DNA of 64,000 bases from Penicillus capitatus. Taxonomy: Eukaryota; Plantae; Chlorophyta. Below the pieces are notes generated by a model. The model searched no databases and was not told the origin of the DNA. It was given only the letters and a program-made list of their open reading frames with translations. This document shows positions 185 to 64,000 of this stretch, piece after piece (position 1 is the stretch's first letter; each line of letters begins with the position of its first letter). The stretch spans positions 1 to 64,000 of the forward strand of contig OZ287712.1 in NCBI GenBank assembly GCA_965649825.1, read 5' to 3'. The translations under genes and the position numbers were made by a program.

Positions 185-3100
185 CGTAACAATTTAACCG
201 TAGCTGAGGATCGTAACAATTTAACCGTAGCTGCGGATCGTAACAATTTAACCGTAGCTGCGGATCGTAACAATTTAACCGTAGCTGCGGATCGTAACAA
301 TTTAACCGTAGCTGCGGATCGTAACAATTTAACCGTAGCTGCGGATCGTAACAATTTAACCGTAGCTGCGGATCGTAACAATTGAAGCAAAGGGGGGACC
401 CTTGTACCCTCCGGCGGGTCGTAACAATTGAAGCAAAGGGGGGACCCTTGTACCCTCCGGCGGGTCGTAACAATTGAAGCAAAGGGGGACCCTTGTTCCC
501 TTCGGCGACCGACGTATGGTGTGCGCTGGAATGCTCGAGCACGTTAGCGCTCCGGGAGGTCGTGCATGTCGGCCAATCCGCTCTCCCTCTGCATGCGGGA
601 TCTTCCTAGAAGTTCTCCATGTGCATCCACGATCAGGTTTGCAGCCGACGTGTTCCGCAGGTCGGAGGTGTCACGCGGAGGGGAGCCGACGAGCCGAACG
701 GCTGAAACATGTCTGCACGGGACGGTCCTGCATGTCGGCCAAGCCACTCGCCCTCTGCATGCGGGATGTTCCTAGAAGTTCTCCATGTGCTCGTCCGGGG
801 CCAAGTCTGCCGTCGGTCCGCACACCGGCGACTGTGACTGGCTTGTACGATTGGCCGTCAAATCTATTGGATACACCACTCTGCGCACGGCCGACCGCCC
901 GTTTACCGTCTATCCGCACCTAATGGTGACCACCGACACGTCTTCACGCGCTTGCAACTTTTCGATGCGGAGATCGCCCCCGGCACACGCGCCCCTTTGC
1001 GCTGCAGAGGTGCGAGCGGCACAGAGAGATGGAAGCCAAGGACAGTGGACAAGGTCGTCGCAAAGGTTGGCGGACGGCCTCGAAAGTCGCGGCGAAGTCG
1101 TCGGCGGCTGCGGGTCGTAACAATTGAAGCAAAGGGGGGACCCTTGTACCCTCCGGCATATCGTAACAATTTAACCGTAGCTGAGGATCGTAACAATTTA
1201 ACCGTAGCTGCGGATCGTAACAATTTAACCGTAGCTGCGGATCGTAACAATTTAACCGTAGCTGCGGATCGTAACAATTTAACCGTAGCTGCGGATCGTA
1301 ACAATTTAACCGTAGCTGCGGATCGTAACAATTTAACCGTAGCTGCGGATCGTAACAATTGAAGCAAAGGGGGGACCCTTGTACCCTCCGGCGGGTCGTA
1401 ACAATTGAAGCAAAGGGGGGGACCCTTGTACCCTCCGGCGGGTCGTAACAATTGAAGCAAAGGGGGACCCTTGTTCCCTTCGGCGACCGACGTATGGTGT
1501 GCGCTGGAATGCTCGAGCACGTTAGCGCTCCGGGAGGTCGTGCATGTCGGCCAATCCGCTCTCCCTCTGCATGCGGGATCTTCCTAGAAGTTCTCCATGT
1601 GCATCCACGATCAGGTTTGCAGCCGACGTGTTCCGCAGGTCGGAGGTGTCACGCGGAGGGGAGCCGACGAGCCGAACGGCTGAACATGTCTGCACGGGAC
1701 GGTCCTGCATGTCGGCCAAGCCACTCGCCCTCTGCATGCGGGATGTTCCTAGAAGTTCTCCATGTGCTCGTCCGGGGCCAAGTCTGCCGTCGGTCCGCAC
1801 GCCGGCGACTGTGACTGGCTTGTACGATTGGCCGTCAAATCTATTGGATACACCACTCTGCGCACGGCCGACCGCCCGTTTACCGTCTATCCGCACCTAA
1901 TGGTGACCACCGACACGTCTTCACGCGCTTGCAACTTTTCGATGCGGAGATCGCCCCCGGCACACGCGCCCCTTTGCCTGCAGAGGTGCGAGCGGCACAG
2001 AGAGATGGAAGCCAAGGACAGTGGACAAGGTCGTCGCAAAGGTTGGCGGACGGCCTCGAAAGTCGCGGCGAAGTCGTCGGCGGCTGCGGGTCGTAACAAT
2101 TGAAGCAAAGGGGGGACCCTTGTACCCTCCGGCATATCGTAACAATTTAACCGTAGCTGAGGATCGTAACAATTTAACCGTAGCTGCGGATCGTAACAAT
2201 TTAACCGTAGCTGCGGATCGTAACAATTTAACCGTAGCTGCGGATCGTAACAATTTAACCGTAGCTGCGGATCGTAACAATTTAACCGTAGCTGCGGATC
2301 GTAACAATTTAACCGTAGCTGCGGATCGTAACAATTTAAACCGTAGCTGCGGATCGTAACAATTGAAGCAAAGGGGGGACCCTTGTACCCTCCGGCGGGT
2401 CGTAACAATTGAAGCAAAGGGGGGACCCTTGTACCCTCCGGCGGGTCGTAACAATTGAAGCAAAGGGGGACCCTTGTTCCCTTCGGCGACCGACGTATGG
2501 TGTGCGCTGGAATGCTCGAGCACGTTAGCGCTCCGGGAGGTCGTGCATGTCGGCCAATCCGCTCTCCCTCTGCATGCGGGATCTTCCTAGAAGTTCTCCA
2601 TGTGCATCCACGATCAGGTTTGCAGCCGACGTGTTCCGCAGGTCGGAGGTGTCACGCGGAGGGGAGCCGACGAGCCGAACGGCTGAACATGTCTGCACGG
2701 GACGGTCCTGCATGTCGGCCAAGCCACTCGCCCTCTGCATGCGGGATGTTCCTAGAAGTTCTCCATGTGCTCGTCCGTGGCCAAGTCTGCCGTCGGTCCG
2801 CACGCCGGCGACTGTGACTGGCTTGTACGATTGGCCGTCAAATCTATTGGATACACCACTCTGCGCACGGCCGACCGCCCGTTTACCGTCTATCCGCACC
2901 TAATGGTGACCACCGACACGTCTTCACGCGCTTGCAACTTTTCGATGCGGAGATCGCCCCCGGCACACGCGCCCCTCTGCGCTGCAGAGGTGCGAGCGGC
3001 ACAGAGAGATGGAAGCCAAGGACAGTGGACAAGGTCGTCGCAAAGGTTGGCGGACGGCCTCGAAAGTCGCGGCGAAGTCGTCGGCGGCTGCGGGTCGTAA

Positions 3101-6100
3101 CAATTGAAGCAAAGGGGGGACCCTTGTACCCTCCGGCATATCGTAACAATTTAACCGTAGCTGAGGATCGTAACAATTTAACCGTAGCTGCGGATCGTAA
3201 CAATTTAACCGTAGCTGCGGATCGTAACAATTTAACCGTAGCTGCGGATCGTAACAATTTAACCGTAGCTGCGGATCGTAACAATTTAACCGTAGCTGCG
3301 GATCGTAACAATTGAAGCAAAGGGGGGACCCTTGTACCCTCCGGCGGGTCGTAACAATTGAAGCAAAGGGGGGACCCTTGTACCCTCCGGCGGGTCGTAA
3401 CAATTGAAGCAAAGGGGGACCCTTGTTCCCTTCGGCGACCGACGTATGGTGTGCGCTGGAATGCTCGAGCACGTTAGCGCTCCGGGAGGTCGTGCATGTC
3501 GGCCAATCCGCTCTCCCTCTGCATGCGGGATCTTCCTAGAAGTTCTCCATGTGCATCCACGATCAGGTTTGCAGCCGACGTGTTCCGCAGGTCGGAGGTG
3601 TCACGCGGAGGGGAGCCGACGAGCCGAACGGCTGAACATGTCTGCACGGGACGGTCCTGCATGTCGGCCAAGCCACTCGCCCTCTGCATGCGGGATGTTC
3701 CTAGAAGTTCTCCATGTGCTCGTCCGGGGCCAAGTCTGCCGTCGGTCCGCACGCCGGCGACTGTGACTGGCTTGTACGATTGGCCGTCAAATCTATTGGA
3801 TACACCACTCTGCGCACGGCCGACCGCCCGTTTACCGTCTATCCGCACCTAATGGTGACCACCGACACGTCTTCACGCGCTTGCAACTTTTCGATGCGGA
3901 GATCGCCCCCGGCACACGCGCCCCTTTGCCTGCAGAGGTGCGAGCGGCACAGAGAGATGGAAGCCAAGGACAGTGGACAAGGTCGTCGCAAAGGTTGGCG
4001 GACGGCCTCGAAAGTCGCGGCGAAGTCGTCGGCGGCTGCGGGTCGTAACAATTGAAGCAAAGGGGGGACCCTTGTACCCTCCGGCGGGTCGTAACAATTG
4101 AAGCAAAGGGGGGACCCTTGTACCCTCCGGCATATCGTAACAATTTAACCGTAGCTGAGGATCGTAACAATTTAACCGTAGCTGCGGATCGTAACAATTT
4201 AACCGTAGCTGCGGATCGTAACAATTTAACCGTAGCTGCGGATCGTAACAATTTAACCGTAGCTGCGGATCGTAACAATTTAACCGTAGCTGCGGATCGT
4301 AACAATTTAACCGTAGCTGCGGATCGTAACAATTTAACCGTAGCTGCGGATCGTAACAATTGAAGCAAAGGGGGGACCCTTGTACCCTCCGGCGGGTCGT
4401 AACAATTGAAGCAAAGGGGGGACCCTTGTACCCTCCGGCGGGTCGTAACAATTGAAGCAAAGGGGGACCCTTGTTCCCTTCGGCGACCGACGTATGGTGT
4501 GCGCTGGAATGCTCGAGCACGTTAGCGCTCCGGGAGGTCGTGCATGTCGGCCAATCCGCTCTCCCTCTGCATGCGGGATCTTCCTAGAAGTTCTCCATGT
4601 GCATCCACGATCAGGTTTGCAGCCGACGTGTTCCGCAGGTCGGAGGTGTCACGCGGAGGGGAGCCGACGAGCCGAACGGCTGAACATGTCTGCACGGGAC
4701 GGTCCTGCATGTCGGCCAAGCCACTCGCCCTCTGCATGCGGGATGTTCCTAGAAGTTCTCCATGTGCTCGTCCGTGGCCAAGTCTGCCGTCGGTCCGCAC
4801 GCCGGCGACTGTGACTGGCTTGTACGATTGGCCGTCAAATCTATTGGATACACCACTCTGCGCACGGCCGACCGCCCGTTTACCGTCTATCCGCACCTAA
4901 TGGTGACCACCGACACGTCTTCACGCGCTTGCAACTTTTCGATGCGGAGATCGCCCCCGGCACACGCGCCCCTCTGCGCTGCAGAGGTGCGAGCGGCACA
5001 GAGAGATGGAAGCCAAGGACAGTGGACAAGGTCGTCGCAAAGGTTGGCGGATGGCCTCGAAAGTCGCGGCGAAGTCGTCGGCGGCTGCGGGTCGTAACAA
5101 TTGAAGCAAAGGGGGGACCCTTGTACCCTCCGGCGGGTCGTAACAATTGAAGCAAAGGGGGGACCCTTGTACCCTCCGGCGGATCGTAACAATTTAACCG
5201 TAGCTGAGGATCGTAACAATTTAACCGTAGCTGCGGATCGTAACAATTTAACCGTAGCTGCGGATCGTAACAATTTAACCGTAGCTGCGGATCGTAACAA
5301 TTTAACCGTAGCTGCGGATCGTAACAATTTAACCGTAGCTGCGGATCGTAACAATTTAACCGTAGCTGAGGATCGTAACAATTTAACCGTAGCTGCGGAT
5401 CGTAACAATTTAACCGTAGCTGCGGATCGTAACAATTTAACCGTAGCTGCGGATCGTAACAATTTAACCGTAGCTGAGGATCGTAACAATTTAACCGTAG
5501 CTGAGGATCGTAACAATTGAAGCAAAGGGGGGACCCTTGTACCCTCCGGCGGGTCGTAACAATTGAAGCAAAGGGGGGACCCTTGTTCCCTTCGGCGACC
5601 GACGTATGGTGTGCGCTGGAATGCTCGAGCACGTTAGCGCTCCGGGAGGTCGTGCATGTCGGCCAATCCGCTCTCCCTCTGCATGCGGGATCTTCCTAGA
5701 AGTTCTCCATGTGCATCCACGATCAGGTTTGCAGCCGACGTGTTCCGCAGGTCGGAGGTGTCACGCGGAGGGGAGCCGACGAGCCGAACGGCTGAACATG
5801 TCTGCACGGGACGGTCCTGCATGTCGGCCAAGCCACTCGCCCTCTGCATGCGGGATGTTCCTAGAAGTTCTCCATGTGCTCGTCCGTGGCCAAGTCTGCC
5901 GTCGGTCCGCACGCCGGCGACTGTGACTGGCTTGTACGATTGGCCGTCAAATCTATTGGATACACCACTCTGCGCACGGCCGACCGCCCGTTTACCGTCT
6001 ATCCGCACCTAATGGTGACCACCGACACGTCTTCACGCGCTTGCAACTTTTCGATGCGGAGATCGCCCCCGGCACACGCGCCCCTTTGCGCTGCAGAGGT

Positions 6101-7569
6101 GCGAGCGGCACAGAGAGATGGAAGCCAAGGACAGTGGACAAGGTCGTCGCAAAGGTTGGCGGACGGCCTCGAAAGTCGCGGCGAAGTCGTCGGCGGCTGC
6201 GGGTCGTAACAATTGAAGCAAAGGGGGGACCCTTGTACCCTCCGGCGGGTCGTAACAATTGAAGCAAAGGGGGGACCCTTGTACCCTCCGGCATATCGTA
6301 ACAATTTAACCGTAGCTGAGGATCGTAACAATTTAACCGTAGCTGCGGATCGTAACAATTTAACCGTAGCTGCGGATCGTAACAATTTAACCGTAGCTGC
6401 GGATCGTAACAATTTAACCGTAGCTGCGGATCGTAACAATTTAACCGTAGCTGCGGATCGTAACAATTTAACCGTAGCTGCGGATCGTAACAATTTAACC
6501 GTAGCTGAGGATCGTAACAATTTAACCGTAGCTGCGGATCGTAACAATTTAACCGTAGCTGCGGATCGTAACAATTTAACCGTAGCTGCGGATCGTAACA
6601 ATTTAACCGTAGCTGCGGATCGTAACAATTTAACCGTAGCTGCGGATCGTAACAATTTAACCGTAGCTGCGGATCGTAACAATTTAACCGTAGCTGCGGA
6701 TCGTAACAATTTAACCGTAGCTGCGGATCGTAACAATTTAACCGTAGCTGCGGATCGTAACAATTGAAGCAAAGGGGGGACCCTTGTACCCTCCGGCGGG
6801 TCGTAACAATTGAAGCAAAGGGGGGACCCTTGTACCCTCCGGCGGGTCGTAACAATTGAAGCAAAGGGGGACCCTTGTTCCCTTCGGCGACCGACGTATG
6901 GTGTGCGCTGGAATGCTCGAGCACGTTAGCGCTCCGGGAGGTCGTGCATGTCGGCCAATCCGCTCTCCCTCTGCATGCGGGATCTTCCTAGAAGTTCTCC
7001 ATGTGCATCCACGATCAGGTTTGCAGCCGACGTGTTCCGCAGGTCGGAGGTGTCACGCGGAGGGGAGCCGACGAGCCGAACGGCTGAACATGTCTGCACG
7101 GGACGGTCCTGCATGTCGGCCAAGCCACTCGCCCTCTGCATGCGGGATGTTCCTAGAAGTTCTCCATGTGCTCGTCCGTGGCCAAGTCTGCCGTCGGTCC
7201 GCACGCCGGCGACTGTGACTGGCTTGTACGATTGGCCGTCAAATCTATTGGATACACCACTCCGCGCACGGCCGACCGCCCGTTTACCGTCTATCCGCAC
7301 CTAATGGTGACCACCGACACGTCTTCACGCGCTTGCAACTTTTCGATGCGGAGATCGCCCCCGGCACACGCGCCCCTTTGCGCTGCAGAGGTGCGAGCGG
7401 CACAGAGAGATGGAAGCCAAGGACAGTGGACAAGGTCGTCGCAAAGGTTGGCGGACGGCCTCGAAAGTCGCGGCGAAGTCGTCGGCGGCTGCGGGTCGTA
7501 ACAATTGAAGCAAAGGGGGGACCCTTGTACCCTCCGGCGGATCGTAACAATTTAACCGTAGCTGAGGAT
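185..7569. repeat. Nested 27-bp VNTR (CGTAACAATTTAACCGTAGCTGCGGAT) in blocks of 7, 7, 8, 6, 8, 12, 17 and 1 copies
   Basis: Blocks start at 185, 1162, 2138, 3142, 4136, 5185, 6297 and 7543. Copies were counted from the spacing of CGTAACAATT. There is a GAG/GCG variant and one 1-bp insertion near 2340. Confidence 0.95.
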
Positions 7570-7737
7570 CGTAACAATTATAACCGTAGTTGAGGGTCGT
7601 AACAATTATAACCGTAGTTGAGGGTCGTAACAATTATAACCGTAGTTGAGGGTCGTAACAATTATAACCGTCGTTGAGGGTCGTAACAATTATAACCGTA
7701 GTTGAGGGTCGTAACAATTATAACCGTAGTTGAGGGT
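7570..7737. repeat. 28-bp variant subrepeat (CGTAACAATTATAACCGTAGTTGAGGGT) x6, found only in the terminal unit
   Basis: Copies start at 7570, 7598, 7626, 7654, 7682 and 7710; one has a gtag>gtcg change. Confidence 0.95.
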
Positions 7738-8363
7738 CGTAACAATTGAAGCAAAGGGGGGACCCTTGTACCCTCCGGCGACCGACGGGTGGTGCGAGGA
7801 TGCAAAGCAGAGGGGGGGGCCCTTGTACCCTCCGGCGGATGTGGGTGGACGGGCGTGAAAGCGGTTGACACGGTTAGGCGCGTGTCAATGTCAGTTAAGC
7901 CTATATCCTTAATTAAGGGTCGATACGGTTAAGCGGGTGCGAGGAGGAGAAGGGATACCGAAACAGAGCGACAGAGATTTGTGCTGCACGGAGATTTTGG
8001 CCTTGGCTGCGTTCGTATGTGTCGCGCGGAGGCGCCGAACGAAACGATAACAGCGGAAGTCTTACAAGTAGTCGGAGCAAGGCGTTAACAAGGTGCCAAT
8101 TGTTCATTAAGTACCCCCGTGGCGACGTGACATGCCTATGCAGGTGAGTCACCCTCGCGCCAGAACCAAAGGATAGCGCCTCAGGTGAGTCGGCCTGCGT
8201 CCCCCCAAGACATGAACCCCTCAGAAACGAGGCAGTCACATCGCCAAGCCAGATCTTGGCGACAGTATGTGCTGCAGTGTCGATGGTAAACGGCTCTCGA
8301 CGATCTCGGCCACCAATGCCAAAGGGAGAGTCGAGTATCAGGGCGGCCAGATGAACTCACAGA

Positions 8364-8887
8364 TCAACCGTTGTTTTGTTTCTCAATTCCTCGCAATGAC
8401 ATATCCACTTCCTTTAGTAGACTATCAATGGCCAACGATTCTTCTTTCAGTACCGCAGTCAACTTTTCTGCCTCTTCGAGCGCTTCTTTTGCGTTCGCGA
8501 GGACCTTTTTTCTATAGTTGCCAGCGTAGCCTGTGCTGTCTTGGTCCTGCAATGCTCTTAGTCTTCGTCCCAGATCGGATAGAATGCTTTTCTCAGCGTC
8601 CTCGATTTCTAAAGATAATCTCGGTGCTTCTGTAGCAACCTCGTCGTCCATCGCGCTCGGTGACTTCTTCCCTAAGGCAGAAAACGGTCAAAGTGCGTGC
8701 TGTCGTCGATGACGTACCTACCTAGGATCTCTCCTAGGCAACGCTCGAGGGCGTTGTTAATCTGACCTATGCGGAGTTTTTTTACCAACATCCATTTTCG
8801 GATGAACTGTTTGATGGCGAGGTTTTCGAGTATTTCCTCGTCGATCTCTTCCTTCAGCATGCGTGTAATTCTGTTGGAGATCGACAT
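8364..8887 (-). CDS. Hypothetical helical/coiled-coil protein (~157 aa, 2 exons; 5' end may be truncated)
   Basis: ORFs 8672-8887 and 8364-8651 join in frame via a 50-nt GTAGGT...CTTAG intron (8721-8672), giving ...ERCLGEILG|KKSPSAMDDEVATE... No family recognised. Confidence 0.5.
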
Positions 8888-8889
8888 AC

Positions 8890-9138
8890 AGAGAGATGCG
8901 AGCCAGACAGAGAGAGAGATGCGAGCCAGACAGAGAGAGAGATGCGAGCCAGACAGAGAGAGAGATGCGAGCCAGACAGAGAGAGAGATGCGAGCCAGAC
9001 AGAGAGAGAGATGCGAGCCAGACAGAGAGAGAGATGCGAGCCAGACAGAGAGAGAGATGCGAGCCAGACAGAGAGAGAGATGCGAGCCAGACAGAGAGAG
9101 AGATGCGAGCCAGACAGAGAGAGAGATGCGAGCCAGAC
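8890..9138. repeat. 23-bp GA-rich minisatellite (ATGCGAGCCAGACAGAGAGAGAG) x11
   Basis: ATGCGAGCC recurs every 23 bp from 8896 to 9126. Confidence 0.97.
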
Positions 9139-39400: not shown

Positions 39401-39681
39401 TGATAGGATCCTGATCAGGAATCACTGGCGGAGCTTGATCGTCGCGTAGAGGAGGAAAATTTCTCTCGGCTGAGGCACGCTGTCGAGGACGATTCGGTGC
39501 CCATCGCTGATGCTCCAACCGAGGTTCCGGTATTAATTTCCGCGCAACTTTGGAGGTGTCCTGCACACACCTGTTGGTGAATGTGTGGGATACGATGCAT
39601 CAGAACGACTCAACAGAATAGAGGTCGCCGTATTGACCAGATGAATCTTCCCTGGTACTGTCGAGTCCCGACGATGCGCAT
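36488..39681 (-). CDS. Organelle-targeted FAST/OPR-like helical repeat protein with RAP domain
   Basis: Basic N-terminus MRIVGTRQYQGRFIWSIRRPLF. LNNSIM...TITMLHRI. Helical repeats (SILLWSLGQF, LLSVAFALSQL). RAP-like RILRAL|GWHVVKVNIGDWKQH. Acidic tail. Confidence 0.75.
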
Positions 39682-39826
39682 CGTTTGACGAGGCGAAACT
39701 GCGAACACGTGTCGATCAACGTCGACAGAACGGGAGAACTCGCGGAATTGAAATTACCGCGTAAGAGCACTTGAGTTCCTCTCGCGGCTTACACCGCCGC
39801 AGTAATTGGGAAGAAATCATTCTGGA

Positions 39827-42800
39827 TCATTCAGCGAAGAAATGTCCACTGCGCATGTAACACCCCTCGTCGTGTACAGTGTGCTTAGCATTCTTGCATT
39901 TCAGCCAAGGCTGTGTGTAACGAAAGGGACCTGGGTTCTCTAACAAGAATGGGTGAAATCGACATGGTCCTCGAGAGTCCTGGTCCGTGATGCCACAGCG
40001 AAGGCACTTTGCTGGCCTCTTGACATGACACCTGCATGGCACAACGGAAGACATCCATGTGATTCGCATTGGTTTCGGCTGATCACTTTCTCGGTGGTCG
40101 ATGCCGTCTCCTTGGCTGAGCAATGGAAGTTGCTGAGTCATCTTTCTGCCACGGAGCGGCCAGGAGCTTTCTTGGATGTAAAGAGGACGGAGGACTCTTG
40201 AAGAGATCGTATTCAACATCGAGCTTAATCTCAGGGGAAAGGAAGGGGATGGCGGCATCTCGCTCTGCTTCTGAAGGAGATTCAACTTTCGTCTCTTCCT
40301 CCTCTGTTTCGAATTTTGCCGTCTCCTCTATCTGCGTTTCCTGAGTCTCCTATGATGTAAAGTTCAGGAGTGTTGTTTGGATGTATCTATCTTTGTTTAC
40401 CGGTATGGCATCACGTGTTTTATTATTGTTCTCCTCTGTAGGTTGTATTTTTTTGATACGAGGCGTTTCTTCTTTCTTTTCTTTTCTCAGTGATACAATC
40501 TCACGCTATTAACACAATCACTCTTCAGCGTCGTGCAGTACTTAGAAGACAAAGTTAAAGTGAGAGTTTATTGTTGGCTTCAGGATGTAAATGGTTTCTT
40601 GTTCGCTTAAGCAGTAAGCACAACGAAACTGCACTAGTGGAACGCAATCCAAACTTTCAATCCAACACTTCCACGCCGCGTTGCAGCTGTGATGGCTCCA
40701 TAATCCACATCTCTCGAGAACACTGCCAGGGATGTACTCCCAACACGGTAATTCAGTGTCTTGGCTTTTGTACTCGCCCGACTCGTACGGCCAGCACAGG
40801 CCACTCGAATACCCCGAATCTCCGGCGTTTGTCGATACATTGTCTCCACTTGTGACCAGATGCGTCGAATCGGGATATCTTTTTCAATCAAGTGACAGAT
40901 CATGGATGCCAGTGTGGCGGCACTTGTACAGGGCGTATGTGTCACAAAGGGAAACAACTGAAAAGTGGGATCGACATCCATGCCACGAGCTCTGAGTGCC
41001 AATTGGCGCCGTGCTGCGTGCTGTATAACACACGTTTCTATGTGATCCATGTATTTTCGGCCCAGAACATCTGGTGTATGCATTTTGGTTCCCTGCTCAC
41101 GGCATCTTCGGCTTTCCTCTAGTCTGGACGAAAGCAGAGGACTGAGCAGTGCCAAGGAAACCACTTCCCTCCCAGCACGCACGTCGGCTATCTTCTGTCG
41201 GTCGCGTAAGTGTGCTTGAAGAAGGAGTGCCGTTGTGTCATTCTTCATCCGTGTTCGTCCATTTCTGAGGACTAGAGGCATCGGAATCTGTCGCGAAGCG
41301 GCTTGTTTGGGATCTTGGATCGCGTTCTTCTGTGACGCGTCCACCTCAAAGTGATCCGCATTGCTGTGAAGAAGTAGCAGTGTTCGTGCAGCCGTCGAGC
41401 AGAAAACCTCGGCCTCTGGTTCTACTGCCTTTGTAATCGCAGCTAATGTACGCAGTCGCATGTTGAGAAACGCGGCATGGCCATTTGCTGTCGATAGATG
41501 ATAATGGTCGTAATGCAATGATAGTTATTTGCTATGCGCACTTGGATATCGATCATCTCTTTCTCAATTCTCGCTGTCGTCCTTGCCGTTTCTCTCAATT
41601 CTCTGTTTTCATCTCTCTGCCGTACAGGAAAGAATGCTCACGAGGAGCAGAGTGATAGATGTGGCAGAATCTCTACGAGCTGTTGGATTTCGTGACGCAT
41701 CTTGTCCATGAGGATCTTTGTGCGATGTCTAAAGTGATGAAGCTGATTCTTGTATGCCTCTTTGAGTGCTTGAACCGGAACATCGCCCTGAGCAAATGGT
41801 TCATTTGCAGGGGCTGTCTCCCGACTGTTCGGTTGTCGGATCGAGTTCACTGGATCTGTGTTCGAGGATCGAGGCAGATGCGCCTTCTGCTGCAAAGAGA
41901 GTCCTTACTTCTCTTATAAAATGTGTGACAAGGACACTCACTTGTGCTGTCGGAGAGGAGGAACGTTCGCCTCGCTGCAGGGCCTGTTGTAAATTGGCTA
42001 CCTCTCTTTTGTGTCGCCGTTCCATGTCTTCAATGACCTGCGTCCTTTTCTGATGGAGGATTCTTCTGCGTCTAGCCATCAGCTGACCTTTCTGTAGTGT
42101 TCCCTGATCTCCACAGGAGATGGTGGCGGCAGCTTTTCTGCCCCTTTCTTGCGTGGATTCCTTTGCCCATCGTTATCGGAGACGTCCTGGATGGGCGAGC
42201 GCCCTTCCCTGTGCGATGCGAACTCCTTCCCGCTGCAGCGGTTGACGAGTTGCCGAAATTCTGTCTCCAGCTGACTCCAAACATCGCTCTGTGCTGAAGG
42301 AAGATCCCCTGTTACCACACATCCGATTCTCCAAGGCCACAACGCTTCCTCCTTCTCACCTTGAAGCAGCTGTTCACATTTCTCCGAGTACCGCTCGCAC
42401 GAACGGGAGAGATTTTTTATCTCTTCCGATTCTGCATCAATCACGGACGTTTTCGCCTGCCACTGCGCTTTTGCCATCGCCACTTGAGAGTCGAGATGTC
42501 GCCGTTCCGCATCTCTCAGCGATGCTCTCTCTTGCTCCAGTCGCTGTTGCCGAATGGCCATAGCGCGATGCAGCGCCGCCAATTCAACGGTTCTCTGTCA
42601 TTCCATCCGTCGGTCGGTTCATGACGGCGATAGAGAATGGAGCGTGCATGCCCTGTGCATCTCGATCTGTTCTTCGGTCGCGCACGCGATCTGAATGGAA
42701 GAGGGGAATGGAAAGGCAGAACTACATGAGGTGTGTCGTGGAATATTAAGTTTTTTGCGCTGCTGCACATCTTCAGATTCTTCATCGCCAGTGTGGACGG

Positions 42801-42891
42801 CGAAATTGAATCCGTCGATGTGCTGAGCAAGCGTCATCCAGAACTTATGTATCTCGGCGAGATCGGTCGACAATGGCATGGTCGCATGCAT
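39827..42891 (-). CDS. Multi-exon coiled-coil protein with C-terminal Cys/His-rich segment; proposed host of a 1036-nt intron (41541-40506) containing rps3
   Basis: Coiled-coil exons from 42891 to 41542. Phase-0 junction IEKEMIDIQ|REIVSLRKEKK. Later exons ETQETQIEE... and KCLRCG...CRFHP...WLKCK..H...C...H. The 5' exons (42891-41542) are better supported than the long-intron join. Confidence 0.55.
40634..41461 (-). CDS. rps3: Nuclear, intronless mitochondrial-type ribosomal protein S3 (uS3m)-like
   Basis: C-terminal uS3 signature SAATLASMICHLIEK...IRGIRVACAGR...GSTSLAVFSRDVDYG...TRRGSVGLKVWI*. Single uninterrupted ORF; likely start CAACATG at 41461. Confidence 0.8.
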   Translation of the reverse strand: MRLRTLAAITKAVEPEAEVFCSTAARTLLLLHSNADHFEVDASQKNAIQDPKQAASRQIPMPLVLRNGRTRMKNDTTALLLQAHLRDRQKIADVRAGREVVSLALLSPLLSSRLEESRRCREQGTKMHTPDVLGRKYMDHIETCVIQHAARRQLALRARGMDVDPTFQLFPFVTHTPCTSAATLASMICHLIEKDIPIRRIWSQVETMYRQTPEIRGIRVACAGRTSRASTKAKTLNYRVGSTSLAVFSRDVDYGAITAATRRGSVGLKVWIAFH

Positions 42892-43719
42892 TCATTCAAG
42901 ATCTGAATGACGAGGTGGCGACTGATCTGAGCTGCGATGTAGCGATTCTGATCTAGTTCTTAACACAGAGAGCGTTCTAAGTGTCTGGACAAATAAACCG
43001 AAAAAGAAAAGACATGATTGATTGATTCAGTCAAGAGTCATCGGGTAACATGAGCGTTTGCTGTTGACTTAATCAATGCGACTTTTTCTAGGTGTTGCCT
43101 GATGTACTGCAACTAACTCATCTTTGTTTCGAACAAAAAGAAAACCCCTAGTGATCCGACCAAGTCAGCGACAATAATAAACAAAACAGAGAGTAAAGGC
43201 GCCAGCAATGCATTTCTAGTTTGGCGATTGTGGATGTTGTTGTTATTGTAGTTGTTGTAGTAATGGTTGTTGATGTCTTAACGAAAAAGCAACAGTCTTT
43301 CCATTCTGGTCCTCTTTTTGCTCTCTGTCTGCTGAAACGATTCGTCCATTTGAAGACAGCTGTGCGTTAATCTGGACTAGATGAACAGCAGCAGCACTAA
43401 CGCGATGGATCTCATTGTCTTTGTTTTTTGTTTGTCATCATCGTGTGAATAAGTGAAATCAAATCCTGATTATTGTGCTGGCTGCTGATGGTTCTATCGA
43501 ATGATCGACTGCGCTGGGTGGATGGGTGGACAGGTACAAAAGGAGTGGAGACAATTTTCGTCAAGAAAAACTCAAACCCATCCAAGGAAGCTAGGTCAGG
43601 ATGAACGATAAACAAATCTAAAAGAACACAAACTAGGTATTATTGCTTGATTGATTCATATATGCTGTCAACAATCAATCCGAAGAGAGGAAGTGGAAGA
43701 AGCGGAAGAATAATGCGAT

Positions 43720-44180
43720 AAGATAGATAGATAGATAGATGTTCATCTTCTCTCCTTCGGAACAGTGCTTTCTGTAAATTTTTGCTCACACAGACAGACA
43801 GGCAGACAGATACTACGTAACGTACGCACTCGCTATTGGATTTTCTCGATTGTCACACGATCGCTTCATGATGTTATATGTGTTGTTGTTGTTGACGCCT
43901 TAGTGCAAATCAATCTTCGTTAATGACTTCTAACAAACAAACGAACAAACAAACAAACAAACAAAACAGTCTCTAATGTGGCAGGGATGAAGGTCAGAAA
44001 TGCGTTGCTGTTATTGCTCTGTTGCTCGTAATCCAATGTGTTTGCATGCTTGTTGACTACGCTCGGCCTAAACGATAGCAAAACAAAACCCTAAGACTGC
44101 TTGAACCTGTTTCCTTGACAACAACGGATATATCCTTCGTTGATTGGAAGAAACAAACAAACGAACAAACAAACAAACAG
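43720..44180. repeat. Microsatellites: (GATA)n at ~43720-43740; (CAAA)n with a CGAA interruption at ~43932-43965 and ~44150-44180
   Basis: Directly visible short tandem repeats in a 2-kb non-coding stretch. Confidence 0.8.
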
Positions 44181-44957
44181 GCCAGCCAAGAATTACAGGC
44201 GTCTGTCTCTTTCAAAAGACTTTTCATCTGTTAAAGAAGAAGACACCAGATCAAATGGATAACACAATTCATAAACTTCTTTCCTGGTCAAGGGGATCTC
44301 TAATGCAGATGCGGATGTGGTTGCGTGGCGCAGCATAATCTAAGTCAAAGCCATGAAAAATGCATAGATCTAGAGATGTATGGACATTGACTATGATTGG
44401 ACGGACAGTCACTGTCCTCCCATTCGTGGATTGTCCTCCGATGCCCAGCACCAGAGGGGGTGATGGTGATGGGCAAAAAGGCGCCACCATTTCATGTCTG
44501 TTTCTGCCAAAATGAATGCACAGCTTTATTATCGGATAATGCAAGCAGCAGCAGCACAAAGGAACGAGCAACGAGCAACGATGATGAAAGTAAAATTCTA
44601 GCCTTGTGGTTTGCCTGCTTTCTTATACACAGTACAATGCTAGGATGCATGTCTGGCTGAAATAACGCCTGTAAAAAGCTTCCGAAATCAAAAACGAGCC
44701 AGAAACATAGGCAAACAGAAACACACTGTCATCTTCATTCGCATAAAACTCAGAGTTCTTCTTTTTCAGCTGGAACTGAACTCGATAGACACCTTTTGTC
44801 GTCGTCTTTGTCATAAACAATAAACTCCTCAGAGACTCAAATGTCAGGATGTCAGGATGTCGATGAAAACAGCTAAACCAAAACAATTATATTACGTTTT
44901 TGATGAAAGGAAGGAATGTGCTTTATTGAGAGATGCCACACAGATCGTGTGTGTGTT

Positions 44958-46366
44958 TCAGTTAGACCAGCCAGGATTAGGTGCATCAGAAAAGGTCGTG
45001 CCATCATAGACAGCATGAGGATAATCTTGCTTGACACTTGCGCTCAGTGGCAATCCGTGGGCGTCCATGTCGCCACCCTCTCCGACGATGCCTGTATTCA
45101 ATGACGTGACAGAGTCAATGTGTCCGCCTGGGCTGAAACCACCATAGCCAGAACCGGGGGAGTGTCCAGAAAACGAGCCGAAGTTTTTGACGTCTCCTGT
45201 TGCGCTGCCCATCGGGCCAACGGGTAGGCTGTGTGCCACGGCTGTTGGGCTGTTTCCAGTGCCGGCCAATTCATTCAAAGACGCATGAGGATAGCCATTC
45301 ATATTTGGAAATGTTGTTCCAAGCCCATTCGCTGTGGCATTGGAGAACAACATGTTCCCATACCCTCCATGAAGTCCCGTATATCCAGCTGCAGCAAAAG
45401 CTCCACCACCTGCACCACCACCACCACAGACACCCTCGATCCAAACAGGCAGGCAGGTAGGAGGAGGGGATGCACTTTCGAGGCCTAAGGCCATGTTGCT
45501 TGAAGCTCTCAATCGTGCGCTTCCTGCTCCCACCGGTCGATAGGTGCTCTGCATTCCGGGCAGAACAGCGGGATTCATGCGTCCAGGGGACGGAAACTTC
45601 TGGTAGGCTCGGTTTCCACTGGCATATCCTGTTGGCTGCACTCCCGGAAAGGTTTGCGGATACACATATTCGGCGGGAGTGGGACCGACAAACCCTCTCT
45701 GTTGCAGACCGACAGGACTTCTGGTGACAGCCATCTGGTCGCGAGGCACAGCATGCTTTATTTCAATCTTCTTGTCGTGGAGGGTTTGCATGACTCCATT
45801 CGCAAACACCTTCGCAACAGCGTCTTCTTCTTGAAACGTCACAAATCCGAATCCACGCGGTCGCTTGTTTTCGTGGTCGTACATAACCACCGCATCTTTG
45901 ACGGCGCCGTATTGCTCAAAGTATTCGCGGAATGCTTTCTCGTCGACTGTCGGTGCCAAACCTCCCACGAATATCTTCTTAGAACGCTGCGACCCGGATT
46001 CGTTCGTCTGTTTTTTCGCCTGATGCTCTTCTTTGGGCACGGCTTTCTTCGCCTCGACCTACAACACGTCGAACGAACATACATACCATCTGCCTCGGAG
46101 TTGCTGCCACGAGGGCGACAACGCACTTCTCTTCTGTCTATGGTGTGTGGCTGAAGCACGACTCTGTCAGCGACAGTGGGGTCGTCGAAGACAACGAATC
46201 CAAAGCCCCGTGGTCTGCCTGTGTTCCTGTCGTAGTTCACGAACGCCTCAGTCACGTTGCCGTAGTTCTCGAAATACATTCGGAGCTTCTGGTCGTTTGT
46301 TTCCCAACTGAGGCCACCAACGAACACTTTACATTCCTGCTTGCTGTTCTGGTTACTCGTACTCAT
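44958..46366 (-). CDS. Two-RRM hnRNP A1/Musashi/Hrp1-like RNA-binding protein
   Basis: KVFVGGLSWET...RPRGFGFVVF...HTIDRRE|VEAKKAVP; KKIFVGGLAPT...RPRGFGFVTF...KIEIKHAVPR; Gly/Pro-rich tail. Confidence 0.93.
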
Positions 46367-57493: not shown

Positions 57494-58533
57494 TTACATC
57501 AGAGCATTTGGCTGAGGAAAATGCCCTGGCATAAGAAAATGATCTGGCCCGTAGTTGAATAGAAGCTCTTGTCCAGCAATGAGTGACTGCATCGTAATCA
57601 CCACGGCGAAAGGGAATCCAAATACATAGGCCGACTGAACTGTGGTATTCTCCGGTGCGACAAGCTGTGGGGGATCTAGATCATCCGTCGAGAACCTGAG
57701 CTTCTCTCCATTCAAATAGGGATCCCTATAACCACACTCGGAAACACAGGCAAATACTCTGTTGACCATACAACTGAACTGGATGCTCCGTGGCGATCCG
57801 AGGGTCATTGATCAGGCCGCCAGGACTATTGTAGCCATACGGCGAGATATCCAACGGCACGGTTTCCTGTCTGCCTGTAGCTGGATTCACAATGTGGAGA
57901 TCCGTTTCCATCATATAACGCCTGAGCTCGCATTCCCATTCCTGGACAGTACGTGTCCAGTTCTTCCGAGGATTCCGTACCAGATTGTAATCCGTGACGT
58001 ACCTACACGCTGCACAGTGCGTCAGTCAATCAAGTGGCAAACAAGAGACCGTGGCAAGATCAGTCCTCGATAAACACCCAGCACCGTGTCCATTTCGATG
58101 AATTTCCTCGCCCGTACACCATTCTGTCCCCTCAGTTTAACCCGTGGATCGGTGTCGGGGATTTTGAAGATCTCACAGAGATCCATCCTGCGGAGCAGCT
58201 GACTGAGCAAAAGGCATGCGCTTCTGACACCTGCCTGAAGTCTAGACGTCGAGGGAGATATATCTCAAGACCGAGAGCGTTGCTGTAGATGAGATTGGAT
58301 GAATGGAATCGCTTGGCGTCTTCTATGAGGTCCATCAACTGTTCAGTAGCTTTTTGATTCACGGCGTTCGATTTTGTTGGCTTGAAGACGATTGGAATTT
58401 TGTCCAGCCGTTCGCATTTGCGGTACTTTCGGTGGACCATATTTCTGAAGGCCTGCATCAATCCTTCCGTCAAGAAGCAGCCAAGGACAGGGTCCTCAGC
58501 CACTCGGATACCTATGGAAGCTTTCCGGGACAC
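57494..58533 (-). CDS. SET-domain protein (divergent; start uncertain)
   Basis: GQNGVRARKFIEMDTVLGVYRG; GGLINDPR; ITMQSLIAGQELLFNYGPDHF. Confidence 0.7.
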
Positions 58534-58570
58534 TCAAATCAGGAGAGTGTCGAGAGAACTTGGAAAGACG

Positions 58571-61500
58571 ATGTCACCGTCTTCTTCTCGAGCGGCGACA
58601 TCTCGCCGATCACCAACTTCGTCCAGTATACGACGAAAGAAGGAAAGTCCTTCACTCTCCATTTCGTCGTCGGTGCAATTCTGCCGATGTCAACGCTAAT
58701 GAAATGTCATGTCCATGTCATCTGCGTCCATCACTGCAGTCGTCGCGCAATGGAGAGTACTTCAAGCGAGATTTCCGACGTCGAGATGGGACACACGTGC
58801 ATGCAACGTGCCATGGACGTCGAGCGTCACATTCTAACTGAATACAAAGCAGAACTTGACAGGCGAGACCAAGATCTGAAAGAAAGAGAAGATGCACTCG
58901 CACAAAGAGAACGCCGTCACATCACACATGGAGAAACACTCACGGCGTCGAGAGTGCGTCGTTTCCATATTCCCTCCGTCTGCTTAAGAGGAGAAAGCCA
59001 CGCAGGCAGAAGAGCTTAAAGACCGGGAAAGGCCGACGGAGAGACGCTTGGTGTGCGATGCATCTCCGCGAAACTTCGAGAAGAAAGAGCGCATACTGCG
59101 CCAGAGACTTGAAGATCTGCAACAAAATGAAAACGCATTAAAGCGTCGGGAAGAGACTTCGAATCTTGTACACGACGAGGTCTCTGCGATGATGGAATCG
59201 CTGAGTCAGTCTCTCAACCAACTGGCGTCGGACCAAGCGACGCTGGCAAAGCAGAAGTCGGATTTCAAGAAAGACGTTCAAGTGTGGCCCGCCCCATGCC
59301 GTGCTGAAGATGTTGATCGTGAGGGTGATGGATGTGCAGACGCACACGGATTGGTTTCGTGGAAAAGAAGAAGGATTGCTCGAAGAGATTCAGGAAGTCG
59401 AGAAGGAATGTCAGAAGAGAAGACATGAACTGTTCGCCTGTGAGCACGAGAGCAATCAAACACTCAAATCCCTCGAGGCCGCGATCGAAGAGGCCAGACA
59501 AGAAAGACGACGAGACGAGCAGGAACTCAAAGAAACGCAACAGAAGCTGAAGACTTTAAAAACGAAAGTTGTCTGGATGGATGGCATCGGATCGTTCGGT
59601 GATGTGCGTGTTCGTTCGTAGGCGAGTGAAGAAGAGACGAACAGTCGCCGACTGGCTACCTCGGTTAAAGAATCGAAAGAAGAACTCAGAAGAGTGAAGC
59701 AAACGACTGAGAAGACGATTGAAGCTGGAAGACAAGATGTGCAAGAGATCAAAAAGCACGTAGATGCTCTGACGGTCGAAGTGGATCAGTTGTCGAAGAA
59801 GCGCGACGCACTTCACATTCAGATCCAGAAAGAGAGTTTTCAACACGAACAGGACACCCAAGTATAAACGATCTTTGAATCGTGATGGTGGTTGGCAGCT
59901 TCCAGCAGCGTCATGAGGCAATGCTGAAGAGAAAAGCGAGTGACTTTGAATCGGAGCAGAAAAGAACGCGTCAGGAACTCGAGGAGTTGATTTCTCGACA
60001 CGAGATGAAGATGACGCAGTGGCAACAGTACACGCGAGAAGAAGATACCAGACATCAGATGATAAAGAACCAAATGGAAACGGAGCAAACACGGTCACAC
60101 ATTTGAGCGCTCAGATGAAGTGTGACGAGAGACCTCTAGGCTGAAGCAGATGAATGGGCAGTTGGAAAAACGCGAACACGAAGTAGCTGTTTCGATGGAG
60201 GCTCACGAGAAGGAGTGGATAACGGCAAGAGAGGAGATTGAACGTGAAGCGTCTTTGCTGAAACGGCAGATGGAAGCTCTTCAAGAAGAGAGATTTTCAA
60301 TGCAACAGAAGGAACATGAACTGGAGATGGAGAGAAGGGAGATTCATGCAATCAAACTTCGTCTTGAATCGGAAGCAGCTGCACACATCCAAGTGCGTGG
60401 TCTCTGATTTCGGTTAGTGCGTGGAATCGCTGTTTTCCATCGCTATAGGAGAAAGAAAGCGTTCTGCGGGATTGGGAGACTCATCTCGTAAAGAGAGAAA
60501 AGGAATTCGAGAAAATGAAAGATGAAGAGATGTGTAAAATCGCCGGAAGAGATCAAGATGTGGCACGCAGATTGCAGGCTTTGGATGTCGAACGTGCAGA
60601 TCTCGAAGAGGCGGAGTGTGCCTTTAATAAGGTAAGGAAAGAAAATCATCAAGCATGTCTTATGTGTTGCATGCACAGTATCAAATCTCCAAGGAAGCGG
60701 AACTGGGTGCACGAGAAAAGCGGCTGCAGGCCACGCAGACTGAACAGGAAGAGCGAGCTAAATCTCTTCAGGAGATGAAAGAAAGATGCACCTCGGCTAT
60801 GAAGCAGCTCGAAGTGAGCGAAGAGGCGTCCGAGCGAAGCAAAACGGAGGTGGGTCCGGCTATCCCGTCACATCATCGCAAGTTCCCGGAGCTTCCTTGT
60901 TCAGCTAAGGGCATCCCTCCGCGAGGCAGCGGTGCTGAAGGAGGATGCCAGTGCGGTGAAAATGAGGTATGAAGAAAAGGTTCGGGATATTGAAGAGAAA
61001 GAGCAAGCCGTTGTCGAGTTGGAAAAACAGATCTCCGACAAAACTGCTCAATTGAATCAAGCGTCAGAGGTGATGCGAACTGCCATCGCTTTGAACGTTT
61101 CCTCCGACTGACGAAAGAGGTCTAGGATGTCCAGCTGCGAGAGAATCAGGCTGAACAGAGAGAAAAGAAGACGCAGAGCAGGATACAAAAGCTGAATGAA
61201 CAGCAGAGCCGATTGAAGGATCGAGAAAAGGAATTGGAATCGCTGTCCCGACAGGCAGAAAACAAGAGAAAAGAATCTTGCAAGGAGGCAAGAACACTGA
61301 AAGAAGAAACTCGGATTGCGCTCGCTGCCAAAAAGTATGACGAGTCCTGTCGTTTTGCTGGAAGTGAGAGAGTTTGGACACAGAGCCCTTGTCGATATCG
61401 AAAAGGCATTGGCCGAGAAAGAAAACAAGCTTCACGAAACATGGAAGAACATTTCCTTACAGTTACGCTCCTCTCATCACGGCATGGAAGACGATAAGGA

Positions 61501-64000
61501 GAACGTCGAAATAGATCTGAAGCTTCTGGTAGTCCATCTTGTTTCACTTCATAGCGAACGCATGGTCTGTACCCCTTAGGAGAACAGTGCTTGCATTCAA
61601 GATGTTCACTGCTGGATGCCCGAGTCAGATGTTGATAAGAGGTTGAATGTGGAGCACATCATTCGAATAATGGAACAGAAACGAGCGCTTCTCGTTCAAA
61701 AAGAAACCACGCTGCAACACTGTTTCATTATGCTTCAGTCTCAGATCGCCAAGGCTGTGCATCAGCGTCGATCTCTCCTGCAGCAAAGGAAAGAGATAGC
61801 TCAAGAGAAGAACGAACTCAAACGACTGGCCGAGCAGCACAAAGGAAAAGAAAGGGCGTTGAAAGTACAATCGGTAGAACTAGAATCTCAGAAGGCAGAA
61901 GTCAACGTCCTGAAGATGAATGTGAACGAAACCCAGAAGAGTTTCCAGGTGACGACGGTTTTGTGTCGAGAAATACACGCGGACCTCTCCTTTCTGATAA
62001 AGGAGATGCAGCAACAACTGTTTGAGGAGAAAGAGAGGTTGGCGAGTGCCCAAGTGGATTTTCGTTCCGAGATACAAATGTATCAGATTCAAAAGGAGTC
62101 CTTCGATCGACAGTGTGAAGATCTCGACAAGAAAAAAGACGATCTCGACCAACGAGAGCAAACGCTGGCACAGAAGATGGATGATATGCGAGAGAAGAAT
62201 CATTCCCTCTGTATAAGAGAGGCAGAGGTGGAAGCACAACACTCCGAAAATGAAAGAGAGAGGATGAGGACTGAGAAGGAGGCCAGTCGAGTCGAACAAC
62301 GATTGGCGATGGCGGATCAGCTCAAACGCGAAGAAGAGAAGCTGTGCAAGGACAAGGCTTCTTTTCAGAAACAGAAGGAAGATCTCGAAGGCCGGTGGCG
62401 TGAATTGAAGACGAAGGAGGTCGAACTGCAGAACCAGTGCAACGATCTCATCAGAACAAAGAAGGAAATTGAGGAAGGGCAGAAGACCCTCAAGAATCTC
62501 CCAAAGAGTCTGAAGGACTTGGAGAAACGCAAGGCGGAGATCAAGGACCTCGTGAGTCCCATCACTCATCTGTTCGCCTGCCTGAACACCATCTCCCTCC
62601 ACAGGAGAAGAAGTTATCGGAATCCAGATATGCGACAGATAAATCACGAAGCGCTTTGCGTGAAGAAGAAGAAAAAATGCAAAAGATCAAAGAAACGTTC
62701 ATGCAAGAGAGGAGTGCTTTCGAAGAACGTGTTAGATCGCATCACGAAAGGATCGAGATCAGCGTCAAGGAAGTCGACGCCAAAAACGAGCAGTTGAATG
62801 AAGAGAAAAGCGTTCTCGTCCGAGATAAAAATCAGTTCGAGTGCGTCTGTCGTGTTTCGCCTGTATGTCCATATGCATTCCCCTCTTCTTCTTTGACAGG
62901 CTAGAAAAGCAAAAGTCCATCGGCGAGCTTCGTCATCTTGAGTACGTCTTGCAGAAAGGCGTCGAGAATTTGGATGGCCGCGAAGCACAGATCGCAAAGC
63001 AAGAATGTGAACTTGAAAGGCAAAGAACGGAGTTGGAGCAGATGAGAGTTGATGCAAGAGCCTCTGAAGAGTCTGCAGCGTCATTGAGATTAGATCTCCA
63101 AGAGAAGAAGAAAGTGGGTGGCCGCGTTCAGAAGGCAATGCATTCATTTATCTTCATCTTGGCTTTGTAGGCGTTAGAACTCGAACAGCTCCAAATAAAC
63201 GAAGAGCGGAGAATGGCAGATGAGCGCATCGACGAAGAAATCAACAAGATTCGACAGAATGCCGAGTTTGAGATCTCAAAGATCGAACAGCAGAAACGCG
63301 AACTGGAGATACTGACAGTCGAAGCCAAAAAGGTGTTTGTCCTTTGCCTGAAGCGCACGATCAAGTCATTGTAGGCAAAAGAAGAGGCGAATGAACATAT
63401 CAAGGAGGCAGATATGCGATGCAGAGAGGAGAGACAAAACATCAAGATGCAAGAAGAACTTCTCAAACAAAAAGAAGCACATCTCGTAAGTCATCTTCTG
63501 TCTGCATATATACTCAACCGTGATCACACACTGCATTGGATGCTATTTTATAATGCTATTGAATCTGCAATCTGCGATGGACTCCAGTTCCATCGGTGCT
63601 TCTTTTCAGGAAATGATGAGACACCGACAGAAGACGCATCCCTCTCAACAACATACAAGATGTCCCCTACGTTGATTTGGTTGACGTTTCCTAGAGGAAC
63701 TTGTCTAACGAACCGCAAATGAATGCAGCTAATAAACATGACATGGAAAAGTCAAATCGTATCTTTCGGGATAGTCTTTTGTTAGGCACAGTAATCTAAA
63801 CAGCCTGAGTTCTGTTTTCATTTGCCAAGTCTCATATTCAAGCGTGCTAAGCTCTCTTTCTGTTTTGGATTAGGAAGAGGATCGTTTAGATGTCGATAGA
63901 GTTCATACAGAGGTGGAATCCTCCAAAAGGGAAATAGCAAATAAGCTCCGGCACATCGAAGAACTAGAGAAGACAGCTTCCGACACTGCTTCGACTGCCA
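58571..64000 (+). CDS. Very long multi-exon E/K/Q/R-rich coiled-coil protein, runs off the window
   Basis: Continuous heptad-rich exons (e.g. 61616-62797) separated by ~50-60-nt GT-AG introns. No globular domain recognised. Confidence 0.8.

Follow-up and report, generated by a model that had tools for sequence, protein, structure and literature searches.

The first 64,000 nucleotides (nt) of contig OZ287712.1 of Penicillus capitatus (GCA_965649825.1), analysed here as one stretch and called the window, are nuclear DNA of a siphonous green alga of the order Bryopsidales that is nearer Caulerpa than Bryopsis or Ostreobium. On the minus strand, at 42891-39827, lies a gene of 10 exons for a 519-residue protein with an N-terminal coiled coil and a C-terminal Cys/His domain, referred to below as the host gene. 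Its seventh intron corresponds to a gap of 1036 nt (41541-40506), and this gap encloses, on the same strand, the whole of rps3, an intronless gene for the mitochondrial type of ribosomal protein uS3. rps3 occupies ∼80% of its intron, leaving 80 nt between the donor and the rps3 ATG and 128 nt between the rps3 stop codon and the acceptor. Because the other eight host introns measure only 50, 51, 52, 55, 57, 60, 66 and 78 nt, the gap is ∼18 times their median. A preliminary description of this DNA had drawn rps3 as nested in this way, and all of its coordinates hold (rps3 open reading frame [ORF], exon ends, donor, acceptor, gap, AG at 41488 and stop at 41445-41443). Taken as a whole, it is probable that a relocated mitochondrial rps3 lies nested in the host gene and is transcribed there from a start site of its own.

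Evidence for a host gene that continues across rps3

Searching a collection of 5.8 billion proteins with the rps3 product gave seven relatives; the annotated genomes of Bryopsis and Ostreobium contributed none, and Caulerpa a single entry, a gene model of Caulerpa lentillifera. A scan of Joint Genome Institute metagenomes with the rps3 alignment yielded 192 pattern matches, none of which was confirmed. Among the DNA loci, L004 is 99.5% identical to the window and represents the same species, while L001 and L002 come from a sister species (87% identity to the window over 11 kb). Species farther off are represented by L005, L003 and L006 (the last an independent metagenome scaffold), with rps3 genes that are 57-67% identical. 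An unrooted rps3 tree joined the window species with L001 and then with L006, placed L005, an L009-like protein and Caulerpa in a second group, and set L003 apart. Likewise, the Cys/His domain of the window is 60-62% identical to Caulerpa-like sequences vs 43-48% for Bryopsis and 40-43% for Ostreobium.

The two parts of the host gene are open towards each other. Upstream of rps3, the tail of exon 6 (...IEKEMIDIQ, to 41542) is followed by GTGCGC, i.e. by a phase-0 GT donor that no stop codon precedes. Downstream, exon 7 starts at 40505 behind the phase-0 AG of TTAATAG, where a TAA and a TAG just before the acceptor block the frame; the interval from the rps3 stop codon to 40506 lacks an ATG, and the sole methionine of the 189 downstream residues stands 9 residues before the C-terminal end. 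Joined at the same boundaries, the exons of L001 and L002 also form an intact ORF. Insertions and deletions relative to L001 are multiples of three in the exons (3, 3, 15 and 30 nt), and of 1-5 nt in introns and spacers. L001 retains the donor, and its acceptor and the preceding 18 nt are 100% conserved. The spacers themselves are 86% (80-nt spacer, one 5-nt indel) and 74% identical (128-nt spacer, indels of 1-3 nt, AATAAA present in L001 too). Both host parts are under purifying selection in this comparison: the ratio of nonsynonymous to synonymous substitution rates (dN/dS) was 0.22 for the upstream part, 0.32 for the downstream part, 0.14 for the last exon and 0.26 overall, with dS at ∼0.4.

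The arrangement recurs in L006. There, a coiled-coil exon (TEENAQLKSEL...STNQDLK/GTAGCA; the slash marks a splice site here and below) ends in a phase-0 donor 49 nt ahead of the rps3 ATG, and a phase-0 acceptor, GTGTGACTAG/TGTGAAGTCGAGTCTTTGAGA, lies 93 nt past the rps3 stop codon and is visibly homologous to GTGTTAATAG/CGTGAGATTGTATCACTGAGA of the window. The acceptor is recognisably kept (TTGTGTGACTAG/TGTGAAGTC), and the counterpart intron measures 955 nt. Behind it, the L006 homologue of exon 7 reads CEVESLRRECRENRE, and that of exon 8 contains DLDVEEDLFRSPPASIHPRKLL and has a phase-2 end as in the window. The predicted spliced L006 product is collinear with host residues 305-451 across the junction (score 138 vs 45 ± 7 for shuffled sequences, maximum 73). 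Since hydrophobic residues occupy positions -2, +3 and +6 of the junction in both species, the heptad register is kept over it. No frameshift or stop codon interrupts the host gene in four assemblies of two species or in L006, and nine of nine splice-site pairs are kept. An intact ORF from the same boundaries in L001/L002 and the recurrence of the phase-0 architecture in L006 are beyond chance. Collectively, this comparison of sequences makes it very likely that rps3 is nested in a spliced intron of the host gene.

Homologues contain both halves of the host protein

An exhaustive representative search with the last exon found 71 homologues (best 3.6e-22). Their Cys/His domain has the invariant residues C9, R11, C12, C23, H26, P27, C45, C57 and H63 (CxRC...CxxHP...C...C...H), all nine of which are present in the window. 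The long homologues are single polypeptides of 650-1265 residues, found in Bryopsis sp. KO-2023 (GMH42266.1), Ostreobium quekettii (CAD7694983.1), Cymbomonas, Mesostigma, Volvox africanus and Cyanophora. From 13 homologue N-terminal regions we built a profile from which the Cys/His domain had been removed. The upstream half of the window gene scored 23.5 bits against it, and 35.0 bits once exons 1a and 1b were included, in two collinear stretches (independent E-values 9e-8 and 2e-4); reversed sequence scored -14 to -16, and 300-500 shuffles reached at most 8. For the 35.0-bit version the reversal gave -16 and the shuffles no more than 3. The homologues therefore contain both halves. When the whole window was searched in six frames, the N-terminal profile matched exon 2 only (independent E-value 8e-7) and the Cys/His profile only the last exon.

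The family, to which no function has been assigned, is Archaeplastida-wide, and its Cys/His domain is conserved between glaucophytes and green algae. It has no Pfam domain, and Foldseek comparison of the modelled Cys/His domain with the PDB gave no match; the AlphaFold model itself is confident (predicted local distance difference test score 89.8), and the domain at 39830-40030 is uncharacterised and probably zinc-binding. Word-indexed protein searches returned 7027 candidates for the joined host protein, none significant, the low-complexity coiled-coil query having probably swamped the index, and two candidates for the downstream half, again none significant.

The preliminary description had joined the two flanking exon sets into one gene, and exon phases, selection, L006 and the two-half homologues all bear this out. 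It had also looked to homologues and to synteny in relatives, where single polypeptides indeed hold both halves and the donor-rps3-acceptor layout recurs in L001 and L006.

Gene structure

Coordinates are collected in Table 1. At the 5′ end, the tentative joining of exons 1a and 1b has as its sole basis a polypyrimidine tract and CAG; exon 1a itself shows 91% amino acid identity to L001, with changes mostly in third positions. The exon 1b/2 junction (EMHR/RTVELAAL) fits the family motif and falls in the same place as an Ostreobium intron (HIELHK/RVVELASV). It spans a GC-AG intron, 42651-42595 (AGG/GCATGC...GACAG/AGA), whose GC is found in L001 too.

Two shorter ORFs at the 3′ end were considered as small genes and rejected. 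The continuous ORF of 152 residues at 40285-39827 loses its frame to a 4-nt indel in L001, within the 55-nt intron, and the 80-residue ORF from the ATG at 40069 begins at a codon that is not in L001.

Table 1. Features of the host gene and of rps3, numbered along the window.
Feature	Position	Strand	Description
Host exon 1a (tentative)	42769..42891	-	MHATMPL...GDEESED; start codon 42891; donor GAT/GTGCAG
Host exon 1b	42652..42690	-	IACATEEQIEMHR; followed by GC-AG intron 42651-42595
Host exon 2, coiled coil	42360..42594	-	...ERYSEKCEQLLQ; phase-1 donor; 90% amino acid identity to L001
Host exon 3	42088..42293	-	Motif W.QLE.EF.QL extends profile match past 66-nt intron
Host exon 4	41942..42037	-	VIEDMERRHKREVANLQ...; profile match, intact joined ORF
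Host exon 5	41677..41889	-	...ALKEAYKNQLHHFRHR...EIQQL; profile match, intact joined ORF
Host exon 6	41542..41616	-	RDENRELRETARTTARIEKEMIDIQ; phase-0 end, no stop codon; 96% amino acid identity to L001
Oversized host intron (predicted)	40506..41541	-	GTGCGC...TTAATAG; 1036 nt; contains rps3
Spacer, donor to rps3 ATG	41462..41541	-	80 nt; alternative AG 41489-41488; two upstream ATGs
rps3 (uS3, mitochondrial type), intronless	40634..41461	-	275 residues + stop
Spacer, rps3 stop to acceptor	40506..40633	-	128 nt; AATAAA 40572-40567; no TGTAA
Host exon 7	40401..40505	-	REIVSLRKEKKEET...; frame opens exactly at acceptor; 3-nt indel vs L001
Host exon 8, acidic linker	40087..40349	-	...LDVEYDLFKSPPSSLHPRKLL...; 30-nt and 3-nt indels vs L001; phase-2 end
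Host exon 9 and stop codon, Cys/His domain	39827..40031	-	CLRCG...CRFHP...W.KC...H...GCY...H
TGTAA, likely host poly(A) signal	39789..39793	-	34 nt past host stop; same pattern in L001

Identity and origin of the nested rps3

That the nested frame is a complete, single-exon uS3-like gene, as first described, was confirmed by a match of residues 189-272 to the Pfam family Ribosomal_S3_C (PF00189; 7e-11, 42.9 bits, above the curated cut-off of 34.1). TIGR01009 was matched over its C-terminal half only (positions 110-203 of 212; 2.6e-11, 43.7 bits, below the curated cut-off of 114.5 bits), and the match to VAR1 (PF05316; 8e-5) is weak and under its cut-off. Among PDB chains, bacterial uS3 was matched at 5e-10 and the mitochondrial uS3m chains of plant, Polytomella and Chlamydomonas mitoribosomes at 8e-9 to 8e-7, vs 3e-5 for a chloroplast uS3c chain. 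No N-terminal KH domain was matched in Pfam or NCBIfam, and residues 1-170 are conserved among the algal orthologues only; divergent N-terminal halves are usual in mitochondrial uS3m. The orthologues are 262-275 residues long (268-275 on the DNA loci, 262 for the C. lentillifera gene model) and share one start, with the ATG and Arg2 invariant in seven of seven. The gene is intronless in every locus whose DNA was read (window, L001, L003, L005 and L006), and its dN/dS vs L001 is 0.18.

Several lines point to a mitochondrial past. In Ostreobium quekettii and Bryopsis hypnoides, rps3 is still carried by the mitochondrial DNA (mtDNA) (PMC6944098, Table 3; PMC11852573), the Bryopsis gene with three organellar introns, and the host genes of Bryopsis (L007) and Ostreobium (L008) have no rps3 inside. 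The mtDNA of C. lentillifera, which serves here as a proxy for that of the window species, has no ribosomal-protein genes that were found (PMC6944098), and Caulerpa has a nuclear rps3. The nuclear gene is intronless vs one intron per 100-250 nt in its host. All this fits a move of rps3 into the nuclear genome in the part of the order to which Caulerpa belongs, and by this comparison it is highly likely that the gene in the window is a relocated mitochondrial one. The earlier proposal of a transferred organellar gene in a host intron thus gains the insert-free hosts of Bryopsis and Ostreobium, whose mtDNAs keep rps3. The copy would have landed in the host gene before the window species and L006 diverged, probably in an ancestor that they share with the Caulerpa-like species.

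The large intron falls between two introns common to Bryopsis and Ostreobium (after residues 454/456 and 499/501) and matches neither, but the alignment around it, in a coiled-coil stretch, is uncertain by 15-20 residues, so that insertion into an intron and insertion into an exon are not separable.

What may be a later state is found in L003, a 58-kb contig with the same neighbours, namely a gene for an RRM protein upstream and the AISKLANEAV gene downstream. At 4506-7200 of this contig, tblastn and two family profiles detected no host exons on either side of rps3 and no Cys/His domain. Some 10 collinear conserved non-coding blocks at 44996-43071 (minus strand) of the window are shared with L003 4468-5744; in the window they extend from the stop codon of the RRM gene to a point 180 nt short of the host ATG, and in L003 to a point 257 nt short of the rps3 ATG. 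Most simply, L003 would have lost the host exons while retaining rps3; the unrooted tree is compatible with other readings. The blocks could be a long 3′ untranslated region, a promoter or leader, or an unknown RNA; an Rfam scan of 39500-45000 gave nothing above threshold. Separately, identity to the sister species is 97% over 43300-42892, above any coding exon at the locus.

Expression of rps3 and alternative readings

To make the host mRNA, RNA polymerase would need to pass through the whole of rps3, and 41542 would be spliced to 40505, as the comparison between species indicates. rps3 would come from an mRNA of its own that starts within the 80-nt spacer or in the last host exon before it, and ends either between the rps3 stop codon and the acceptor, where the AATAAA lies, or at the host poly(A) site. 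Its translation would begin at the conserved ATG, and the protein would bring an import signal of its own at the N-terminus. A separate start site for rps3 within the intron is the likeliest route, and we put it at even chances; a promoter shared with the host gene appears unlikely to us, and the rest we leave undecided. The persistence of rps3 in synteny in L003, which has no host exons, suggests that the gene is expressible without the host reading frame.

Several points weigh against this account. The spacers are very short to hold a promoter and a terminator; there is no TGTAA between the rps3 stop codon and the acceptor; and the two upstream ATGs in the 80-nt spacer are awkward for a simple independent rps3 mRNA. 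The host protein is much shorter than its relatives in Bryopsis (780 residues) and Ostreobium (813 residues), by ∼35%, and could be a paralogue rather than an orthologue. The 41542>40505 junction and the start and poly(A) sites of rps3 are all deduced from sequence. A mitochondrial rather than plastid destination would rest on the weak VAR1 match, the uS3m chains and the presence of a plastid rps3 in bryopsidalean plastid DNA (PMC11852573).

One alternative is a single promoter, with the host transcript spliced, or its intron kept or cut, and rps3 translated by reinitiation or internal entry. The spacers of just 49-128 nt favour this, as does the position of rps3 in L003, ∼257 nt past conserved blocks that in the window precede the host start. 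Precedents exist in rps14 within sdh2 (PMC1543663) and in green-algal polycistronic mRNAs (PMC7896298; PMC11892635). UGUAA is the chlorophyte poly(A) signal (PMC1868727), and the minus strand is free of TGTAA for 4.4 kb, from 44193 to 39793, as is L001 at 3287-7645; the stretch starts just past a TGTAA ∼720-760 nt downstream of the RRM-gene stop codon and looks like one transcription unit, an impression that can only be called suggestive because ∼2.4 occurrences would be expected by chance. Against a shared promoter, ribosomes would have to pass an ORF of ∼330 codons with many AUGs ahead of rps3, for which leaky scanning as at the algal bicistronic loci falls short; the bicistronic message envisaged in the preliminary description meets the same obstacle. 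Nor does its proposal of alternative splicing to rps3 fare better: across the window, L001 and L006 there is no conserved acceptor that fuses host exons in frame to rps3, the 49-nt spacer of L006 has no AG between donor and ATG, and all rps3 orthologues keep the start codon. Reading on from exon 6 into the intron was likewise rejected, since the 5-nt indel changes that frame in L001. We also examined a host-rps3 chimera that joins the phase-1 donor of exon 2 to the acceptor at 41488; it could form in the window and L001, and L006 lacks the acceptor.

The same acceptor figures in a further suggestion, a truncated host isoform in which the donor at 41541 is joined to the AG at 41488 across a 54-nt intron, adding QMAMPRFSTCDCVH before a stop codon at 41443. 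As proposed at the outset, AG, frame and stop (41445-41443) are all there, the intron size fits the local norm, and L001 keeps the AG (59-nt intron, 14-residue tail). What did not stand up is conservation: L006 has no such acceptor, and the 14-residue tail differs at 5 positions between the sister species vs 96% identity in the preceding exon. Conservation of the stop is uninformative, because rps3 codons 5-6 hold it in place. The host frame read through 41488 is out of frame with rps3, and the product would be without the conserved C-terminal domain. We consider this isoform improbable; it is compatible with nesting of rps3 and does not exclude it.

A bolder possibility, to which we give equally little credence, is that rps3 never gained a promoter, that one host transcript yields two proteins by splicing on the one hand and by keeping or cutting the intron on the other, and that the intron itself was created by the insertion, with L003 as the resolved end state. 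Creation by insertion is entertained because the position of the intron matches neither of the nearest Bryopsis and Ostreobium introns. If true, these algae would form a natural series in which an organelle gene first borrowed and then took over a nuclear transcription unit.

Three genes in a row, i.e. a coiled-coil gene, rps3 and a small Cys/His gene with no splicing across rps3, would agree with the way in which gene callers list the pieces separately, and with the Caulerpa-like contigs L005 (875-1198), L009 (394-783) and L010 (236-625). In these, the part behind rps3 is an ORF of 81-103 residues with the Cys/His domain only; its own ATG stands ∼79 nt past the rps3 stop codon in a frame that opens at an AG 51-56 nt past that stop, and a TGTAA intervenes 22-27 nt past the stop, ahead of the ORF. 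All three contigs end before any upstream host exons could appear. In the window, L001 and L006, however, the upstream part has no stop and the downstream part no start codon; the homologues have both halves in one protein, and the downstream frame opens exactly at an AG in five of five lineages. Three separate genes are therefore very improbable. That the host is a dead gene, broken by the insertion and decaying, is hardly credible: its reduced length and its complete loss in L003 would fit, but the dN/dS of 0.26 overall and 0.14 in the Cys/His domain at a dS of ∼0.4, the intact frames in two species and L006, and the kept splice sites speak against decay.

Other features of the window

Away from the locus, positions 1-7750 and 8883-9138 form a higher-order tandem array with a period of ∼1 kb, composed of 27-nt (ATCGTAACAATTTAACCGTAGCTGCGG) and 46-nt units of 93-99% identity and followed by a separate 23-nt repeat; this end of the window is its most GC-rich (55-58%). 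At the other end, positions 58000-64000 show strong positive GC and AT skews of up to 0.18 and 0.26 respectively.

Comparison with known systems

How organelle genes come to be expressed after transfer to the nucleus has long been asked, and landing sites in an informative state are rarely encountered. Within one algal order, the loci compared here form a series: rps3 is mitochondrial and the host uninterrupted in Bryopsis and Ostreobium, rps3 appears nested in the window species, its sister species and L006, and it stands alone in L003. A practical corollary is that ordinary gene predictors may miss a nested gene on the same strand or split its host, in keeping with the lone Caulerpa model, and no Bryopsis or Ostreobium protein, among the rps3 search results.

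Nested genes are familiar from animals such as Drosophila and mammals, where most described cases lie on the opposite strand and in long introns. The present case resembles them in that a whole gene would sit inside a host intron, and differs in that rps3 is on the same strand, nearly fills a small intron and is of probable organellar origin. A chlorarachniophyte spliceosomal intron, said to have been described by Curtis and Archibald in 2010, is reportedly of mitochondrial-DNA origin; the two cases are alike in having organelle DNA as nuclear intron sequence, which there is non-functional filler and here would be a working gene.

Polycistronic loci of green algae (PMC7896298; PMC11892635) share with the locus close-packed ORFs on one strand in a layout conserved between species, and the ∼79 nt between rps3 and the downstream ORF in L005 and L009 resemble their inter-ORF distances. 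There, both ORFs are on one mature mRNA and the second is reached by leaky scanning past a short first ORF. Here, in contrast, one ORF lies within the intron of the other, and the upstream ORF is AUG-rich and ∼330 codons long.

The closest parallel is the rps14 gene of grasses in an intron of nuclear sdh2 (Figueroa et al., 1999; Kubo et al., 1999; reviewed in PMC1543663). In both cases a transferred mitochondrial ribosomal-protein gene would lie on the same strand in a spliceosomal intron of a pre-existing nuclear gene, the host product would still be made by splicing the insert out (judged here from sequence comparison), and the layout is kept in related species. Grass rps14 lacks a start codon; sdh2 exon 1 is joined to it in frame by alternative splicing, and it thereby borrows the mitochondrial presequence of SDH2. 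A chimeric mRNA of host exons and rps3 on this pattern is not predicted from the sequences, the available acceptor being out of frame, L006 being without one, and Met1 and Arg2 being invariant. rps3 has its own ATG, no conserved in-frame acceptor and no shared first exon; it resides in a chlorophyte alga and makes up ∼80% of the intron; and nothing marks the host as a mitochondrial protein (no Pfam domain, no fold match in the PDB). Because no host exon or presequence is borrowed, the case tests the intron as merely a transcribed, open landing place. The locus is a variant of the grass rps14-in-sdh2 arrangement without the fused first exon and presequence that define it.

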